Of a DNA stretch of 64,000 bases, positions 1 through 20,800 are shown one piece after another. Each line of letters opens with the position of its first letter. Within the stretch, counting starts at the first letter, position 1. A program made the translations under genes and the position numbers. Where the stretch lies: assembly GCA_964234715.1 (NCBI GenBank), contig OZ174280.1; one strand, written 5' to 3'. This stretch comes from Podarcis melisellensis (lineage: Eukaryota). Below the pieces are notes generated by a model. That model did not search any database. It was not told the DNA's origin and worked only from the letters and a program-made list of their open reading frames with translations.

Positions 1-3000
1 CAGGAATTGGAAGGGACTCAGGAATACAGCCTTCCCCCAACCCAACCCCCCACCCCCAGAAAACCTAACAATATGAATGAGAACGTATGAATTCCTTCAT
101 CCCATTGCATCACTCAGATATCTCTGGAAACAAGCAATTGATGAGTTGTTTGTTGACTAAAGCATCACAGAGGAGTGCATACATTGTGGCCTGTGACAGC
201 TGGAATTGACACTGGTGGAGGGGGGGGTATATTTGTTCCCCTCTCCTTGTCTCCCCTTTTTCATTCACAAAGCGGACATTTGCCCCCTTTGTTTTTCCTC
301 CACCCCAGACCTTGTCTAGACTTGTTAAATTGGCCTAAGGGGCTACTACTGACCCACTCAAGCAATGACCTGAAAGGGGCCTTTGCTTATCCTGATGGAA
401 GGAGCTACATTCCAGTTTGTTCTGGGAAGCCCTCTGGGTCCCTCCATTGCTGGGAAGATGGACCTTAGGGGAAAATGGCAGATGCCACTCCAGCCTAAAG
501 CACCAGAGTAATGCAGTGACCCAGTAGCATTCTTCACTTGAGATGGCTTGATTGACAGCTGAAAAGATGAGCTTTTCCACATGGCCTGCTGGAGCATTGC
601 TAGCAAGATTTGCTTCCATTGCTGAGACTGGAGGATGCCATTAGCTGTCTCTGGTCTCCCTTCCTGGTTATCCCAAAGAAAACCACAAGCGTAAACACAC
701 ATGTATTTACGCAGCAGCACCCTTCTCTGGAAGCTCCTTTCCTTATTATTTCAGTGGTGGAGCTTAACCCACATAAGTGTGAACTAATGATAAAGAAGAA
801 AGTAGCCTGAGGAGCTCTTGCTCAGATTTAAACTTGCTAACAGAAAGTATTTGTATTTGTTTTTGTAGATACCCAAGCTGCATTTTAGCTATAAGGGTTA
901 TGGTAGTTGGTGGATGGGGAGGCTGGAAAAGCAATAAATACTTACCATCCTCTATTAACCCTCCCTCTATATACAGCTTAATTTACCAATCTCATGCTAT
1001 GACCTACAAATCTGGAATTTTTTTAGAGGTGTGTGTGTGAGAGAGAGAGTTAAGCCTTGCCTTTGCTAGGGCCTATTAGGACTTTTCATGCAGCCAAACT
1101 GAAACTTGGAAAGAAGCAGAATAGCCCATAGGAGTCTTACAACTGTCAGACTGTGTCATTATGCTGATCGATGGGATGAGGGAGCAGAGGGAGTTATTTT
1201 TTTTTGTTTTGTTTTGGAGAGGATTTTGCCTCAGGAGTTTGCATCCAGTGACGGCAGAACTTTGGTAGCGTTTCAGAGAGTCAAGATGTCTCCATGTTCT
1301 TGTTTAGTTGCTCACAATTTGGCCTTGACTTGAGTACTGAGTCTTTGTTAATATACTGACTTTGTTTGGCTGCAGAGTGTTAGAGAGCCCTGGAGAGCAA
1401 GTAAAATGTGATCCGCTGCTGTATCCACCCTCTTCAGTCCTGCTCCACAACCCAAAGCTGCAGTATGTGTGCCAACAAGACTCATTTTGTTCCATAGGGG
1501 GTGGGCAACCTAGCATTTGTGGAGGGGTGAAGTAATTGTTGATCAGCATGGATGTTTTATTTCCTACAGGCAAAGATGAAGAGCTGAGTCTCCTCTCTCT
1601 TTAGAGATAGTGGTTCTACCTCCTCTTCCTCAGGAAGGGTGGGGAACTTTTAGCTCTCCAATTTTTTCTTACAACTCCCATCATCGCTGACCACTGGCTC
1701 TACTGACTGGGGCTGACGGGAGTTGTTGGCATCTGTCTGTCTCGGGAGACAGTCAACATCTGGAGGGGCCTGAGCTTCTCCACCCTGGTCATGGGCTGTG
1801 AATAATAACTTGGGGGGGGGGGTTGTTTCGCATCTTCTACACACCATTGTGATTTCCTAGTGAGCAGGGGGGCAGGGAGGAATGGGTGTTAGTTAAGAGA
1901 ATAGGAGTTGAAAAGAACAGTGGAACAAGAAAAAAACGGCCGGAGAGCAACAGGCAGAGCTGTGATGGGGGCAGGGGAGAGACATAGCAGAACAACAGGA
2001 AGTTTTGGAGAGAAACAAAGCCTTTATTATTAAGACACTGGGTGGGATTCACCTAAGGAGCTCTGTCAATAGAAGCCCTGCTCAATGGGGTTCCCTCCCT
2101 CCTCTGGAAATTGGCTCTGAGAGAGTCAGGAGAACCCCAGAACATTGCATGGGTTAAGGAGCGGAGGGAACGTTTCATCTGACAAGTTGAAATGCTTGAA
2201 CATGGTCTGTTAGAACATTCCACCCTCTGTTTCTGTGCAGTCTGGAAGTGTCACGTTAAGGAGCTGGGTGGGAGGCAGATGGCTTTCTCTTAGCTTGCCC
2301 CTTTACCCACCCGCGTTTCTGGAAGGCGTTGTGGTGCTGTTGCAAAATCTCTGCAAACGGCTCCCCAGTTGCTCCTGTGTTCATTCTGCTTTCATTCTTG
2401 GAAACAAACGTGAGAGGGACTGGGATCTGCAAGAGCGGGCAGCTGTTGCCGACGAAGGAGGGTTTGCTCTCATTCAGACTGAACTTGCCTGGGACTCTTC
2501 ATGGAAACCTTGGGTGGCAAATGTTGGCGAAGGGAGACCAAGGAAATGTGGCTCACTTAGCTACATCATCCACCCACTTTCTGACAGGTTATGTTCATGA
2601 TTTTAAGCTTTGAAGCACAGCAGCAAATCTTCACAGCAGAAACAAAGGCTTGTTACAGGTAGCAGGCATGCCTTTCCCCGTTATTTAGATTCCGTAATGA
2701 GAAATAACTGCTGAATAGAAATAACTGCTGAATAGATGGATAGATAGTTTTAAAATGTACAACACAAGACTACAACCAACCAACTTATCCAGCCCCACAC
2801 TTTCTGAGCATCAGCTTGAGGTTTGGCTATTTTGGCTGCTGCTCCTTTCCTTCTGTCTGTTCCAGACCAGGTGTTTCTCAAACATTTTAAATTCTCCCCC
2901 TTCCCCACAGTTCTATAAATACTCTCCTCTCCCCCAACCCCAGCCCAGCACAAACCATCTGTTTAATGGTTGAGTACTTAAAGATGGTATGTCGCTGGGT

Positions 3001-3616
3001 GAGTACAACCTGCAGCTGCTACCAAGGATCTGTGGATGGTGTTAAGGCATATGAGAGATGCTTTTTGGATGAGTGGCCTCCCAAGCTCCTTCTTTGCACC
3101 CTTCTTCTCTTGTTGTCCTTGGAGCTGCTTTCTTGCCCAGCACTGGATTTCATAAAAGAGTTCAGTGCCCCTGTCCAGTTCTGGTCCTTGGAATCTGCCT
3201 TATGTCCCTTGGCCTCTTCCAATGAATGACTATTGTTTGATTGTTCTGAGTAAATCGAGTCATGAAATAGGTGAATGTGAGCAGCCCGCATTGGGGGCTT
3301 CATGTATGAGGCTGAAGCGAGCAAGGGAATGATGCAGGCTGGGGCTGGTGCCATTACATGAAGGGTGGAAATCCTGCCCTCTTGCCTGGAGAATGAAGGT
3401 TGCTTTATTTGGGCAAGCTCAGCAGAGCTAAGATGGAGGGGCAAGGGTGAGGAGATAACAGCGCTCACTCGGTTCTGGCTCACACTCCCTTGCCTTAACA
3501 TCCAGACATTCACAAACACTATTGGGTTCTCAGATCTTACTTTTTTTCTTTTCTCTGCCGTCCTTCATCCAACAATCACAGGGTGGGTTACAAAATAAAA
3601 ACAGAAAAATACATAA

Positions 3617-3758
3617 CATAGAATTACAGTATTGGGACCATGAGGACCATCTAGTCCAACCTCCAGCAATGCAGGAATATTTTGCCCAACGTGGGGCTCA
3701 AACCTATGACCCTGAGATTAAGAGTCTCATACTCTACCAACTGAACCATCTCAGAGCC
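3617..3758 (-). mobile_element. SINE with tRNA-Lys(CTT)-derived head and CR1-derived tail
   Basis: Minus strand reads ...ggtagagtatgagactcttaatctcagggtcataggtttgagccccacgttgggc, then cctgcattgc..ggttggactagatg.. Confidence 0.8.
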
Positions 3759-5551
3759 AGTAACAAACAGAACAACAAGCCCACCTTCTCTCTAGACGTT
3801 CTCCATACCAGCAGGTGCTAAGGACTGATAGTAACTGTGCCATTCAAAACGAAGCCAATCTCTTCTGCTTTCTTAAATGATCTCCCTGTGGTGCACTTTA
3901 CAGCCTGGCTGTTGGCTGACATTGGCAGCAGCTCACAATAAATGTCACAGTGTAGACATTCGGTAATGCCTGGATTAGCATCTGCCAGTCTCCTGCTTCA
4001 ACACCTATCTTGGGGAAAGACTTTGCTCTCTCTTTTTCCTATTTCCTTGGCTGGTGCTAGACGTGTAAAGTAATCAGGTGCAATATACGCAGGGCTGCTA
4101 ACTTGCTCTGAGATGATGTTCTGCTCTCAATAGCACCCTCTGCAGTACAAAGGAAGGCATTTTGGACATTTTTAACTAGACCCTTTTCCGCTGGCTGCTG
4201 AATTAGCTGCAGCTAACACAGATCCTGTGTTAATGAGAGCTCATTTGGGCATTTATAAGAGGACTGACAACAGACTAGGGGTCACTTAGTAGGTCACCTG
4301 GACTATTCACATTTTGGGGTTTCTGCATCTGATGCAAAATCTCATATGTGGCAAGTATTCTCAAAAATACTTTCATTATAAACAGTGTTCTAGTCCTCAT
4401 GATTGTCATGTGTTAGAATGCATCCAATCAAGATCTACAAAAATGTTCCATGTTGGTGAAGGCACTGAACTTTTGTGCCCTATGTGGCTGCTTCTCCCTG
4501 CCAATGGTTCCAGTTATAGCACATTCTGGTTCTGTTACTGTCTGTCACTTAACCCCACCTTTCAATTTCTACCAGATTACTCCTTGCTAAAAATAAAAAT
4601 AAAGTCCATCTTCTAGAAAGCTTCAGCTACTGGGTTCTAAGTGAAGCAACTATATGTGCAAAACATTTAGTAGCCTGCAACGAATTTGTACAAGTCCCAC
4701 TCACTTATATATACTGGGTGGCTTATACGGTTTGTCTGGCAAGCTACTCATCCAACCACGTACTAGCAGCAAGGCTGGAATAAAGCAGGAAAACAGGATT
4801 ATTTTATGAAATTTGGGCAAAGTGACAATTGTTCACGTAGAACTGATTAGTAGGGCTGCAAAGTATTCTGTAGTGATCAGATAGTTTGATTTCTTCCAAA
4901 TTGCCATGCTAAATAAGGTCCCTTGCTTGGCAACCATTCTTGCTTATAGTACCTTAGTACAAAGGATCCCCCCAAGGAAATTCTTAGACACTGGAACTGC
5001 CTATCAGACATGATTCTATCATTATTTGAAATGGTCTACACTATTTATTCTTGAGTGCAAAGTGCCAGATGACATGAAAGAAGTATTTTATTTTACTTTT
5101 TTAATAAAAAAAAATACAGTGTTCTTCCTCCTTCCCCCATGGACCTGCTCCTCACAGACCCTCCACATAGGAAAGAAGCTTCTTCCTGTTCATGGTGTTC
5201 CTGGATCCCTGTCCCATGTGAGAGGGTTGGCAACCATTCCTCATTCTTACTTTGACCCCGAGTCTCCTTCTGGGATGCCCCAAGGTCCGACTGTTTATGA
5301 CCAACACTCTTTTCCAGCTCTATCTTGTTCCAAGATGCAGCTGAGCTGAAAACCTCAGTTTCTGCATCTGAGCACTTTGCAAAATACACACTGATTTTTG
5401 GATTGGTTTTTCCAATGTATGTTAATGCATATGAATATAGTATTTTGAAGTGGCAATCCACTTATGACAAGAGTAAACTAGCCTGAGCTTTTGTTTACAA
5501 GCAAGCCTAGTCCTAGCAGCTAAGAATGAGTTTGTACTACACACGCGTGTG

Positions 5552-14800: not shown

Positions 14801-17800
14801 CCACTGACCTGTGGGTCCCTCTGATTCCTGTTTTCTTCATATGACTCTGTTCCTTGTACTGGCATGTGGGCCTATCACCCCTTTTCAATTTCCTTTCCAG
14901 GCGAACTTAGTAGCAGCCTTTGAGCAGAGCCTCGTGAACATGACTTCCCGTCTCCGACATCTTGCAGAGACTGCGGAAGAGAAGGTGAGTTTGAGGCAGT
15001 TGGCAGGGTCCATGGCTGACCAAGGTGCTGAGGCCTGCCCTACGAAACGGCTTGCTGTTGTTTCCTTTCTCCCACCTCCCCCTAGCATAGGTTTGCAGCA
15101 GAGCAGTTAGTAAAATACTAAAACGCAAGGCATTCATCAGTTATGCTTCACCTTCTAGGACACTGAGCTGGTGGACTTGAGGGAGACAATTGATTTCTTG
15201 AAGAAAAAGAACTCGGAAGCCCAGGCTGTTATCCAAGGGGCCCTGAATGGAACAGACATTACACCCAAAGGTGAGCGCAGCCTTCAACACACACTCTCCT
15301 GGTGGATCTTTGGCTATGCAGCTGCTGAATGGTGGATTAGAGACATGGTGGACAGGATTGATTCCTTTTCTTGCTAGGAGCAAGGGAGGGAGCGGTTAGA
15401 CATTGTGGTGTGGTGCTTGGATAAAATGCACTTTGACTGGAGCCAGTTGGAACACACACTTACTGGTCTTTTAATATTTGAAGGGAGGTAAAGCAAGCAG
15501 CAGCCAGACATAGGGCTGTACTGTGTGGAGGTCTATGCCCAACTTCCTCTTTCTCCTTCCCAGACATGGAGCCCTTGGTAATGAGAGTGGGAGAGAGATG
15601 GAGAAGCCTCATGCTTTCAGTCTCCATAATGTCACAATGACTGTACTTGTGTGTGGCTTCCTCCTCCTTTGTTCTGAAATTGGAGCTCTATAGATGGGAG
15701 CAGCCATCGTTACCATTGTGCTAATGGGAAAAACAGTACAGTGGTAAAGGCAGCTAAGAGTTACACTTCTCTCACTGCCTTCTGGCATTGCACTGATGGG
15801 ATGAAATTCCAGAGGAGTGGAAGGATGGGGGAATGGAGTCATGGTGGTCCTGAACACTAGAAACTCCTGGGTATTTATTGACAAGACTGGATGAGCATGC
15901 CCAAGACAAGAGACCAAGCCATCATCGAATCTGAATACATGCAGCTCCTCATCTTTCCTTATGGTCCCCAGATCTTGCCTGTCCCCAGATGCTGCCCCTA
16001 TGTGCTCCTTTCCCTACTATTCCCACTTCCTTGGGCCCTGCCTGACCTTAGATAAAAATGTTAGATTTGATTTGAGGTCTAGCCTGGGAACAAAGTACAG
16101 AGAAGACTCTTTTTTTGCTAGCTGTGTTTGGAACTGATGCTAAAAACAGAGAGGTGGTAGCTGATTACCTGGGTGCCTGCAAGAGCTTCCAGTCTGTCCA
16201 CAGGTTTTGAATGCATCTCTCCCTCCATCCCTTCCCTGTGACTCTCCAGAGCTGCGTATCAAGAGGCAGAACTCGTCGGACAGTATATCCAGCCTGAACA
16301 GCATCACCAGCCATTCTAGCATTGGCAGTGGCAAGGATGCAGATGCCAAGAAGAAGAAAAAGAAGAGCTGGGTAGGTCAAGGAGGAGGGGAAGTAACGGT
16401 GGGATCTACGTGGGGGTGAAACCCTGTTGTGTGTCTTGTCACAGTAGCTAGTATAATGGCAACTGGGGTTTCAGAGCTACTTGGCTCATGGAAGTACTAT
16501 TGACTACTTACAACAGATTTCTCTGCGAAAGAAACTAGTTTGCATCTTTATTGCTCTTGAGGCCCAGGGGGAATATCCTTTAGCTCCCAAGCTAGATCCA
16601 CTGCTGGTAAGTGATAGGCGTCACTCATGAGGCCCATTAGACTTAATCATGGTATGGATGTGGTAGCCTAAAAGGGAGGCAGGGGTGCTAACCTAGCAGT
16701 GATGGGATCACTAAAAAGAAAGAAAGCTGAGTTGTTGTTTTTTTGTTTATTTTTTATTTTATTATTATTATTATTATTCCAACACCATATGGACTTAAAA
16801 TGTTTCTAGCATGCTTCAAGTTAACTGTCCTCTTTCCCAGACATGCAAACACCCCTCCAGTCTGAATAGCCTTAAAGCATTGGGTGTTTTTGTGCTCTCA
16901 TTCCAGCTGCCTATTTTGAGTCAGGAATGAGACCAAAGAAAGCTTCCAAGTTTTTAAGGCTCCGCTTAAAATATTGGGCAGTGGGATGGGGAGTGATTTG
17001 ACCTGAACCTTTTTAGGAACATTTTAAGGTGCATATTAAATAAAGGTTTCGACTTTTAAAATCAATATTGCCCCACAGCTGGTTTTGCATGGCAAGTTTA
17101 TGACTTGTGCAGCTGATGTCACTCTTCCTTTCCATTTACACTAACCTTGCTGCCCTGCCTTTCCCCACTGCTCCCTAAAGCGGAGAGAGGCCGCTCGCGC
17201 CCAACTCTCAGCTCAGTAGGTGTGCCGTCCTCTTAGGAAGGCTGGTGTAGAAGATTGTCCCGGTTTCTCTGTACTGCCTTGAGCCCCCACCCCATCCCCG
17301 CAGCTTGTTACAGGCAGGGAACCTGAGCTGAACGCATGATTAAGTCTTGCTGTGTTCTTTCTCCCCCCTTTCTTCCTTCAATGCTGACCCCCAACCCCTT
17401 TTTTTCCAGGTGTATGAGGTAAGCTTGGAACTCCCTTCCCCACCCCCACCCTACCCCTCCCTTTCACCAGTCCTTTCCCTGTGTCTTACTCCTGACTGGT
17501 CACTCCATTGTGTTGGGGAAAGCACAGCACTCGTGGAACTAGCCATCCCATTTGCTCTCACACTTGCGCTGCCAAGCCACACAGGAGGGGCCACTGCACT
17601 GGTGCTGCGGCAGGGGTGGGGTGGGGAGTTTCACGCCCCTTTTTGACATGGCTCTGAATCTATCCCTAATGCTACCCAGTCTTAACAGCTCTCCTAAAGG
17701 TCTAGAAAGTCACCAGGAAAAGAGGTTTCAAGAGTGGATTTTTGAAGTACTCATGGGGAACAGTTTAATAATAATCACTGGTCAACAACAAATTTGTTGT

Positions 17801-20800
17801 CTGCGTTTTTTCAGTTGACTTAGGATGAATCTGATGCGCTGAATCCAAAAATCACATTGGTTTTGCTCAATCAGGTCAAGTTTTTGAGCTATGGCCACAT
17901 GTCATTTTTTTACATTTCTGTTCACATATACGCTTGTGTGGAGCATTTTAGAAGAAGTTGGTGGGGGTAAAATGCCATGTTGAATAATTGTTTTGATTGG
18001 AAATGATTATTTTAATGACAAGAAGTATTCAGGTCTGATAGTTCTGGGTGATTATGTCGAAAAGGGATCAGTTTGAAGTCATAAAACCTCGAAATCTTCC
18101 ATAAATTGGTGCGGCTGGAATCAACAGAAAGAACCGGAGCAGCCTCAAGTATCCTGATCTTCAATCAGCACGTTGTCCTGTAGCTCATTGTGGTGAAATT
18201 CCAGTGCCTATCTTCGGAGAACTTCCTGACATTAGTGACAAAGATCCCTCCAGTGTTGAAGGACATGAAGAAGAAGTGGTTCTTGAAGCTCCACATCCAT
18301 TTTCCCAAAAGGAGTTGAATGATCTAGTTTGTGACCTCAGCTTGTCAAAGGACTTTGCCGAACTGTTGGCATCCAGATTGAAGGAAAAAAACCTCCTCTC
18401 TGACAGTGCTCGCATCAGCTTCTTCCACAACAGGCATCAAGAGTACCTCTTTTTTCTCGGAAGAGAAGGACTTGGTGTACTGTGCAGACATTGCGCAGCT
18501 TCTGTTCAAGCTTGGAGTGCCACAGTATGAACCCAAAGATTGGAGACTGTTCATTGACAGCAGCAAGCGATCACTGAAATGTGTTCTGCTACACAACGGC
18601 AACCAGTTTGCCTCTATACCCCTGGCTCACTCGAGTACACTGAAGGAGAACTATGAAGCTGTGAAGTATGTGCTGGAGAAAATTGGTTATGATCAGCATA
18701 AGTGGTTTATTTGTGTTGACCTGAAGATGGTGAACTTTTTGTTGAGACAACAGTCTGGCTTCACCAAGTACCCATGTTTTCTGTGCATGTGGGATAGTAG
18801 GGACCGTGCTCAGCATTACACGAAGAAGGACTGGCCTGTGCGGGAGGAATTGGTGCCTTGCAAAGAAAGGAACGTCATCAACGACCCTCCGGTGGACAGA
18901 GACAGAATACTCTTCCCACCACTGCACATCAAGCTCGGCTTAATCAAGCAGTTCAGCAAGGCTCTGGACAAGGATGGTGACTGCTTCACTTACTTGTGCC
19001 AGGCTTTTCCAGGATTGACCATGGAGAAGTTGAAAGCTGGCATCTTTGACGGTCCTCAGATCCGTCAGCTCACCAGAGATCCAGAGTTCGGAAACTCAAT
19101 GAACGAAGTGGAACTGGAAGCATGGAAAGCATTTATTCTGGTGGTGAAGAACTTTCTTGGCAATAATAAGGCCAGAAATTACGCAGAACTTGTCAACAAC
19201 ATGCTGACTGCTTTCAGAAACCTGGGCTGCAACATGAGCGTCAAGATGCACTACCTATTTTCACATATGGACCGGTTTCCTGAGAAGCTGGGTTCAATGA
19301 GTGATGAGCAGGGGGGAGAGATTCCATCAGGACATGAAAGAGATGGAGACCAGGTATCAGGGTCGCTGGGACGCAGTTATGATGGCTGACCACTGTTGGA
19401 CTCTGAAGAGAGACCTCCCTGCCGCTGAGCATTCCAGGAGTTCCAAGAAACGGAAGTTCAAGCCCTGAAGTTTGAAAAATGGTGAAGCAGCATGCAATTT
19501 ACGTGTACTTACCTTTATTACCCACCATTCAGTTTACAGTAAACCTGACCTGATGGAGAGAAACGGATGCCATTTCCTAATTCAGCAGTGCAAAAATACC
19601 CTAAATCAGTTGTAGAAATCTAGACAACATTCAAAAAGTAAAAAATTGTAGCCCAGTGATAGTATCCTACCACTGCAGCAGTTTGGTTCTGTCCTGTCCC
19701 TCAACACTTAAGGGTTTTTTAAACCTCCTGCCCCTCAAATATATATTTGGTTACTGCAGGCTGTACGTACCATCATCCTCCACACTCAATTGTTGCAAGA
19801 GGAGGAAATATATCGTAAGAATATTGATGAATGTGTTTAATATAGTCATTTCCCATGCTGGGAAATTGTCTATTTTTTTCCTTTGCAAATTGAACAGTTT
19901 CTCTTCTGTCAAGAGAACCCTCCAAATTCAGGAACTGTTTGCAAACATTGTTTGTGCCATAATGTAATCCATCCCACCCTGAAAACTTGTTGAAGAGTGA
20001 GGTATAAATCCCTTACAATTAAATAAATTAATGGATTAATGAATCCACTCTCAGCAGTTTGGCTGTGGCTTCCAAAACCAGCCTAAACTTTGTTTGCATT
20101 TCTTTGTCTGTCTAGAGCAGACAAGGTTTCGTTGGGCCATAAATTCCCAGCATCCCTGATCACTGGCTCTGCATACTGAGAGTCCCAGCAACTTCTGGGG
20201 TCGGGGATACAGGTTCCCCATCCATATTCTAGAATTGCACTCCTTAACAGCACACTCCTTTGCATGCACATCTGTTCAAAAATAAGCCTCACTGAACTCA
20301 GTGGGTCCTACTCCCAGGTAAGTGTGTACAGGACTGCGGCCTAAGTGGCCAGAGGATGAGGTTCAATAGAGCATGGCGCCCACCCACCCACCAATTTCTG
20401 CCACACCATCTCATAGCTGCCGCAGGTCAGAGCAAGTCAGAGAGCTGGAAGATAGAAAGTGATTTCTCACATGTACGACATGACAAGTGCTCTTTGAAGC
20501 CTCCTGAAAGGGTAGCAGAGGTTCAAGCTCTGAGGCAGCTCCAGTCCCCTGGCCTCTTGTGTGCCCTCAGACTGGCTTGCGAGGTGGGTGGGTGGGTGGG
20601 AGGGAGATAGAAAAACCCAGTTCCAATAGTGCCTCCACCCATTACAGTGGCTATTCTCCCTGCTACTGTCTCAATACATGTGTGGATTGATGCCTGTTTT
20701 GTGTGCATGTTGCATGCTCCGCCTGAGCATTGTTGGGATCACAAGTTGACTATTCCCCTCAAGAGAAAAGCACACGGCTGTGTTGGTCTTGACTTGTTTC

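Follow-up and report, generated by a model that had tools for sequence, protein, structure and literature searches.

In this study we analysed a window of 64,000 nucleotides (nt) from the lizard Podarcis melisellensis (contig OZ174280.1 of assembly GCA_964234715.1), in which a DNA transposon resembling the Chapaev3 families, the subject of this text, occupies positions 17776 to 19658 on the plus strand. The element is 1,883 base pairs (bp) long; it begins with the C of CACTGG at 17776 and finishes with the G of CCAGTG at 19658. Its two terminal inverted repeats (17776-17788 and 19646-19658) agree at 11 of the 13 outermost bases, which becomes 12 of 13 when the right end is taken from L001, a contig from public reads, instead of from the window copy. 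An earlier note on this DNA had regarded both termini as intact, and the reads bear this out. When four public runs (X15, X18, X20 and X24), taken as raw reads and contigs, were aligned onto window positions 17300-20100, the read depth was found to climb by two orders of magnitude exactly within 17776-19658, and the sequence of other copies parts from that of the window exactly at these limits, before 17776 in 109 raw reads and behind 19658 in 329. The inverted-repeat finder gave no terminal repeats for the element because they are short and imperfect; they were spotted by eye and then confirmed with the reads. The match to the 5' repeat is unique in the 64-kilobase (kb) window, and no further copy of the 5' end was found there.

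Behind the 5' repeat lies a non-coding region (17789-18112), within which an upstream open reading frame (ORF) of 16 codons ends with TAA (18054-18104), and the transposase frame opens at 18105, right behind this TAA and with no start codon, just as the earlier note had described. The count of about 450 transposase codons free of in-frame stops is likewise confirmed, since 453 such codons are found in three frames: piece a (18105-18449, 115 codons, the counterpart of about residues 116-235 in P0004, a full-length relative), piece b (18451-19311, 287 codons, the catalytic core) and piece c (19313-19468, 51 codons up to 19465, followed by the stop codon TGA at 19466-19468). The three pieces were searched and compared one by one, unjoined. 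Piece b carries all the landmarks of the core, that is, the catalytic D in FIDSS (18550-18564), the catalytic D in CVDLK (18712-18726), the C(2)C motif as CFLC (18775-18786), the LH motif as PLH (18919-18933), the H(4)H motif as HYLFSH (19249-19266) and the catalytic E in SDEQ (19300-19311).

The pieces are separated by two frameshifts, which can be read against L001, a near-consensus Logan contig of 1,839 nt that is 97% identical to the element and keeps an intact ORF of 424 amino acids. At the first (18449-18450) the window copy has lost a CG after 18449, adjoining a run of six T, compared with L001 and most other copies; at the second (19307-19312) it has six G where the family has five, directly behind the catalytic E. 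The earlier note had spoken of only two homopolymer frameshifts, of which the number and the homopolymer nature of the second hold, but the first, the loss of a CpG dinucleotide, is strictly speaking no homopolymer slip. When the raw reads of all copies are taken together, paralogous copies swamp the reads of the window locus; in this pool the CG is present in 157 of 234 reads and one G fewer than in the window occurs in 354 of 424; the remaining pooled reads without CG may share the 2-bp loss. Two in-frame deletions relative to L001 were also found, of 3 bp at 18266 and of 6 bp at 18287. So long an open frame might be taken as a sign of function, as in a domesticated or still active transposase gene, for which the stop-free codons and the intact frame of L001 would speak. 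We give this explanation hardly any credence, for the copy lacks a start codon and the N-terminal domain and bears two frameshifts, one of them right behind the catalytic E, while the element exists in hundreds of copies with inverted-repeat ends, and the copies of the lizard clade diverge in a nearly neutral way (see below).

What the window copy lacks is made clear by its full-length relatives, which have 553-569 amino acids and start with a cysteine/histidine-rich N-terminal region of about 105 amino acids that is absent here. One of them, L006 of the ENA assembly ERZ21867824, contains an element of 2,585 bp (2446-5030) with 91-92% identity to the window copy; the 5' non-coding region matches L006 2446-2778 at 92%, and L006 then has 520 bp extra at the window junction 18112/18113. 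With these 520 bp the element lost its start codon, the cysteine-rich N-terminal (Chapa-like) domain and the remaining part of the 5' non-coding region. The earlier note's impression that the N-terminal region is deleted is therefore right, with the qualification that L001 has the same junction, which makes the loss a trait of an amplified non-autonomous subfamily rather than the private decay of one copy. A second internal deletion lies in the 3' non-coding region (19469-19645), where L006 has about 164 bp extra (4751-4915) at window position 19542. This segment is missing from the window copy and from L001, it occurs in about half of the reads of organism J, with the X24 reads running into it at 19542, and its loss defines the subfamily. 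In addition, two runs show sequence of the full-length kind (coding for ..AVDVT before GINRKN) that joins at 18115. These genomes therefore contain full-length elements, and they also contain other deletion derivatives, e.g. the one with the junction seen in L002.

Two further structures were seen in the reads. A joint that skips 359 bases (window 18090-18450), with CG, CA or TG between its sides, occurs in all four runs and looks like another deletion-derivative subfamily. In X24 (organism J), one identical unrelated sequence stands right before 18186 in 231 raw reads (agreement 1.0), and the depth about doubles downstream of this position; it seems that a 5'-truncated fragment of the element was amplified within another repeat or a duplicated segment.

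Regarding the family to which the element belongs, the earlier note had called it Chapaev3-like, and this is supported by the motifs, the termini, the descriptions in the literature and the fold. A word-based protein search gave 3,031 homologues, whose named hosts include firefly, shrimp, leech, sea louse, beetles, moth, goby and the amphisbaenian Rhineura. An alignment of 39 homologues shows D267, D321, E517, C343, L389, H390, H498 and H503 (numbered as in P0004) to be invariant and C340 to be conserved in at least 90%. In the definition that we adopted, Chapaev transposases are characterised by the motifs C(2)C, LH and H(4)H, and CAC...GTG ends define Chapaev elements, among which the Chapaev3 families have proteins of 556-562 amino acids and elements of 2.3-2.45 kb (PMC4079192). 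The copies from the firefly and from the TARA ocean metagenomes have the same CACTGG/CCAGTG ends as the window copy, and close homologues of its transposase occur in Helobdella robusta, a species with Chapaev3 entries (PMC4079192). The firefly copy (L008, 1088-3395) forms an element of 2,308 bp between these ends, flanked by GAT and AAT with no clean TWA; the gene called at this locus translates not exactly to P0010.

The target site provides another line for the identity. Chapaev3 insertion duplicates TWA between A and T (PMC4079192; PMC3014272). In three TARA copies the 3' end is followed by TAAT, TTAT and TTAT, and the reads give a flank consensus with TTA in front of the element and TAA or TAT behind it, which is compatible with TWA at a low agreement of 0.45-0.79. 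The window copy itself is flanked by ATAAT (17771-17775) and ATAGT (19659-19663), which match at four of five bases and show no clean TWA duplication, and the flanks of the L006 and L007 copies likewise show no clear TWA. The pair ATAAT/ATAGT could be a 5-bp duplication of a palindromic A-TWA-T target with one change, or mutated flanks, or mere chance.

Profile and structure libraries were also searched. No Pfam family was found above threshold for the three coding pieces and four full-length relatives, and the PDB sequence search gave no match either with a single sequence or with a profile of 39 sequences. There are weak, sub-threshold zf-AD matches at residues 26-90 of the N-terminal domain of the full-length relatives, and the Chapa domain has been described as ZAD-like in a 2026 preprint; the two fit each other, which suggests that the part deleted in the window copy is the Chapa domain.

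To compare folds, an AlphaFold2 model was made of the intact relative P0004 (predicted local distance difference test score, pLDDT, 79.4). With Foldseek it matched HzTransib (6pqx) at E 4.6e-7, and VIA-align superposed model residues 178-559 on HzTransib and the RAG1 core with Z 17.3 over 349-373 aligned residues; the matches to the P element (Z 11) and Hermes (Z 9) were weaker. From this model the Chapaev3 core is predicted to be RAG1/Transib-like, and the RAG1-core-like part would be kept in the window copy. In the element, the distance between the second D and C(2)C and the one between H(4)H and E also parallel those in mouse RAG1, whose corresponding residues we take to be D708, C727, C730, H937, H942 and E962. 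Chapaev3 is placed by some authors in the CMC group and by others in the Transib superfamily in the broad sense. In the classification of Kapitonov and Koonin (2015, PMC4411706) it is one clade within the Transib superfamily and bears a zinc finger, named "Chapa", at its N-terminus.

Transib proper was considered as a candidate and rejected. The element's family shares with Transib and RAG1 (PDB 6pqx, 6xnx, 4wwx) the architecture of the catalytic core and element ends that start with CAC. That the reading as Chapaev3 is mistaken, and that the element is Transib proper or belongs to another superfamily, could moreover be argued from HzTransib and RAG1 being the top structural matches, and from the window flanks, which are readable as a 5-bp duplication, the length known for Transib. 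However, no similarity to the Pfam RAG1 models or to PDB chains appeared even with the 39-sequence profile, the flanks of other copies point to the 3-bp TWA, and the protein size, the cysteine-rich N-terminal domain, a putative Chapa domain such as Transib proper lacks, and the LH motif fit Chapaev3 as described. We therefore consider such a misreading very unlikely.

As for the age of the copy, the element differs from L001 by 37 substitutions in 1,825 aligned bases (2.0%), of which 32 are transitions and 13 are CpG losses. The earlier note had pointed to retained CpGs, and this is true in part: the observed/expected ratio of 0.39 in the element is above that in the 5-kb flanks (0.15-0.26) and the whole window (0.21), but 36 CpGs are left in the window copy against 48 in L001. 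The raw reads of X24 cover the flanks about 1-2 times and the element about 130-530 times, which gives a copy number on the order of hundreds; the figure is rough because the flank depth is so low. Most reads are 95-99% identical to the window copy, so that the identity spectrum has one main burst.

The insertion can also be followed in related organisms. Contigs of X15 run from the unique flank into both element ends with 0-1 differences in about 970 flank bases, so X15 is probably the species of the window itself. Contigs of X18 and X20 also span from the flank into both ends, but differ at 17 and 18 of about 865-970 flank bases (about 2%). The earlier note had suggested looking for an empty orthologous site in related lizards; the insertion is present in X15, X18 and X20, and no empty-site joint appears among the rows listed in the read alignment of the four runs. 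As the same insertion is seen under three organism labels whose flanks differ by about 2%, it is older than their split. If neutral change proceeds at 1-2e-9 substitutions per site and year, as we assume, a divergence of 2% corresponds roughly to 10-20 million years. The earlier claim of a young element from a recent invasion thus stands insofar as the copy is only about 2% away from a consensus-like contig, but "young" is relative here, for the insertion, and with it the invasion, predates the split of the three labels.

The earlier note had further proposed horizontal transfer, and the comparison with outside relatives agrees with it. The coding part of the element has 87.6% nucleotide identity to scaffolds of the TARA ocean metagenome (L003-L005, with an intact, intronless ORF of 569 amino acids) and 82% to a copy on a chromosome of the firefly Pyrocoelia pectoralis, and 87 bp of 5' non-coding sequence also match the firefly copy, at 83%. 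For the synonymous divergence (dS) of the transposase, the measure which the earlier note had named for the purpose, piece b gave 0.43 against TARA and 0.74 against the firefly, with a ratio of nonsynonymous to synonymous divergence (dN/dS) of about 0.11-0.14. The copies of ERZ21867824 are closer, with 91-94% nucleotide identity to the window copy; between the window copy and L006/L007 dS is about 0.1 and dN/dS about 0.6-1 (0.10 and near 0.6 against L006), as is expected of dead copies that drift apart. A quick maximum-likelihood tree, built from 31 sequences, unites the window copy, P0001 and the ERZ21867824 copy in a clade with support 99, which lies nested within sequences of shrimp, leech, firefly and marine origin. 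The copy of the squamate Rhineura, with only 64% protein identity, falls into the other main clade together with moth and beetle. The tree of the family is thus incongruent with the host phylogeny, its distribution is patchy, and the nearest relatives outside the lizard clade are from arthropods, a leech and marine metagenomes. Taken together, it is strongly supported that the family entered the ancestor of these lizards by horizontal transfer.

Vertical inheritance of an ancient animal lineage, with the similarity kept up by strong selection on the transposase, would account for the low dN/dS between the lizard copy and the arthropod and marine copies. Nevertheless, dS of 0.4-0.7 is far below the saturation expected for a split more than 500 million years old, the similarity to the firefly extends into non-coding sequence, the tree and the patchy distribution run against the host phylogeny, and the same pattern was published as horizontal transfer for sister Chapaev3 families (PMC4079192). 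Vertical descent from the common bilaterian ancestor cannot give such identities together with such a tree, and we hold an explanation without any transfer to be most improbable.

A more serious alternative is that the family was indeed acquired horizontally but much earlier, into squamates or lacertids, in which case the ERZ21867824 copies would be vertical relatives in a more distant squamate. L006 and L007 stand in the well-supported clade of the window copy, the values of dS and dN/dS among those copies are those of dead copies drifting, and the insertion is already common to three taxa. On the other hand, the host of ERZ21867824 could equally have been invaded independently, the read identities show one main burst, mostly at 95-99%, and the copy of Rhineura, the one squamate named among the relatives, belongs to another lineage. 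We consider such an early entry unlikely on balance, yet clearly more probable than vertical descent.

All these results lead us to the reading that 17776-19658 is, in all likelihood, a fixed, dead and non-autonomous Chapaev3 copy whose family was horizontally acquired by an ancestor of the lizards. Several points weigh against it. The flanks of the copy show no clean TWA duplication, as described above. The contigs that join the flank to the element enter the latter by no more than 24-30 letters, just under the bridging rule of 31 letters, which is what an assembly graph with k=31 yields at a repeat border. The dS of 0.4-0.7 is far above that of published Chapaev transfers (<0.07), so none of the relatives found is close to the donor. 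The benchmark for transfer consists of published host-gene values, 0.57-3.5 for comparable splits (PMC4079192). Moreover, the TARA and ERZ21867824 relatives are sequences without an assigned host.

Starting from the anatomy, copy number, shared site, motifs, fold and incongruent relationships directly observed above, the following course of events may be proposed. Full-length members of about 2.3-2.6 kb encode a transposase of about 560 amino acids, which would be composed of an N-terminal zinc-finger (Chapa) domain and a RAG1/Transib-like ribonuclease H core with a DDE triad, in which the C(2)C...H(4)H set is probably a zinc site. The enzyme would recognise short inverted repeats beginning with CAC, excise the element, presumably by a hairpin chemistry of cleavage, and reinsert it at AT-rich A-TWA-T sites with duplication of TWA. 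After entering the ancestor of these lizards horizontally, the family would have given rise to a subfamily that lost the 520 bp with start codon and Chapa domain as well as about 164 bp of the 3' non-coding region, and that was probably spread in trans by full-length elements. The family reached a copy number on the order of hundreds, and the insertion at this locus had already taken place when at least three related lizard taxa separated. The two frameshifts, the small in-frame deletions and the substitutions of about 2%, many of them at CpG, would have been gained after insertion or been present already in the source copy.

Among the closest known Chapaev3 families are Conan, Merrow and Garfield (PMC4079192), which duplicate TWA in an A_T context, as the flanks of other copies suggest for the present family too, and which share with the element's family the CAC...GTG ends, a transposase of about 556-562 amino acids with C(2)C, LH and H(4)H, internally deleted non-autonomous derivatives, and a high cross-phylum identity that was read as horizontal transfer, including into a lizard. 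Conan is Chapaev3-1_ET of the tenrec and Chapaev3-3N1_AC of Anolis (Zhang et al. 2014, PMC4079192), and Conan_ET (1,865 bp, 461 amino acids) is close in size to the window copy. Membership in one of these families needs about 80% nucleotide identity to its consensus, and the comparison made here is by description only. There are differences as well: the host here is a lizard other than Anolis, the Anolis copies are 12-35% diverged and long extinct whereas the present family is about 2% diverged, and the published transfers are near-identical across hosts, unlike the outside relatives reported here. The families Chapaev3-1_AC and Chapaev3-2_AC of Anolis carolinensis (Novick et al. 2010, PMC3014272) also resemble the element in having a lizard host, a length of 1.8-1.9 kb and CACTG starts; they duplicate TWA, which the flanks elsewhere in the present family suggest as well, and the repeat CACWGSCCAAC of Chapaev3-1N1_AC (PMC3014272) differs from the 5' end of the element at one position. 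However, they are old, with at least 12% divergence and 4-15 full-length copies, while the present family is far younger and has on the order of hundreds of copies.

It has already been reported that Chapaev3 families were transferred horizontally, among others into Anolis (PMC4079192), and our literature search for Chapaev in Podarcis and other squamates gave only statements related to Anolis. The event reported here is therefore of a well-documented kind rather than a new one, and the family may already be catalogued. Going further, one may tentatively picture an undescribed Chapaev3 family that invaded the ancestor of some group of lacertid lizards about 10-20 million years ago and amplified to hundreds of copies, mostly without the Chapa domain, its nearest outside relatives living in aquatic invertebrates and a firefly; we find this conceivable, though we would sooner doubt it than rely on it. 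If true, it would be the youngest known Chapaev invasion of a reptile, and intact full-length copies might persist in some species. What the present case adds is a well-resolved and fairly young example of a DNA transposon crossing from invertebrates into squamates, a known hotspot, together with a predicted structure in which the Chapaev3 core is RAG1/Transib-like. It does not change current views on how Chapaev3 elements work or spread. For annotation, it is useful that a long open frame in a putative NAV1 intron is explained as a dead transposon copy; in its surroundings, where the earlier note had placed decayed CR1 and L2 copies, a Pfam search with the ten ORFs neighbouring the element gave no match, and neither did an Rfam scan of the whole window.

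Two observations concern other members of the family. The copy of a goby (Knipowitschia) clusters tightly with copies of the sea louse Caligus, a fish parasite, and of a crab (P0078, P0038, P0062, P0027), and this cluster is a candidate for host-parasite transfer of a sister lineage. One of these proteins, P0062 of the snow crab, is annotated as "pyruvate dehydrogenase phosphatase regulatory subunit" (PF01571) and matches the transposase of the window copy with 74% identity across 79% of the query; in this gene model a host gene has probably been joined to a transposon copy.

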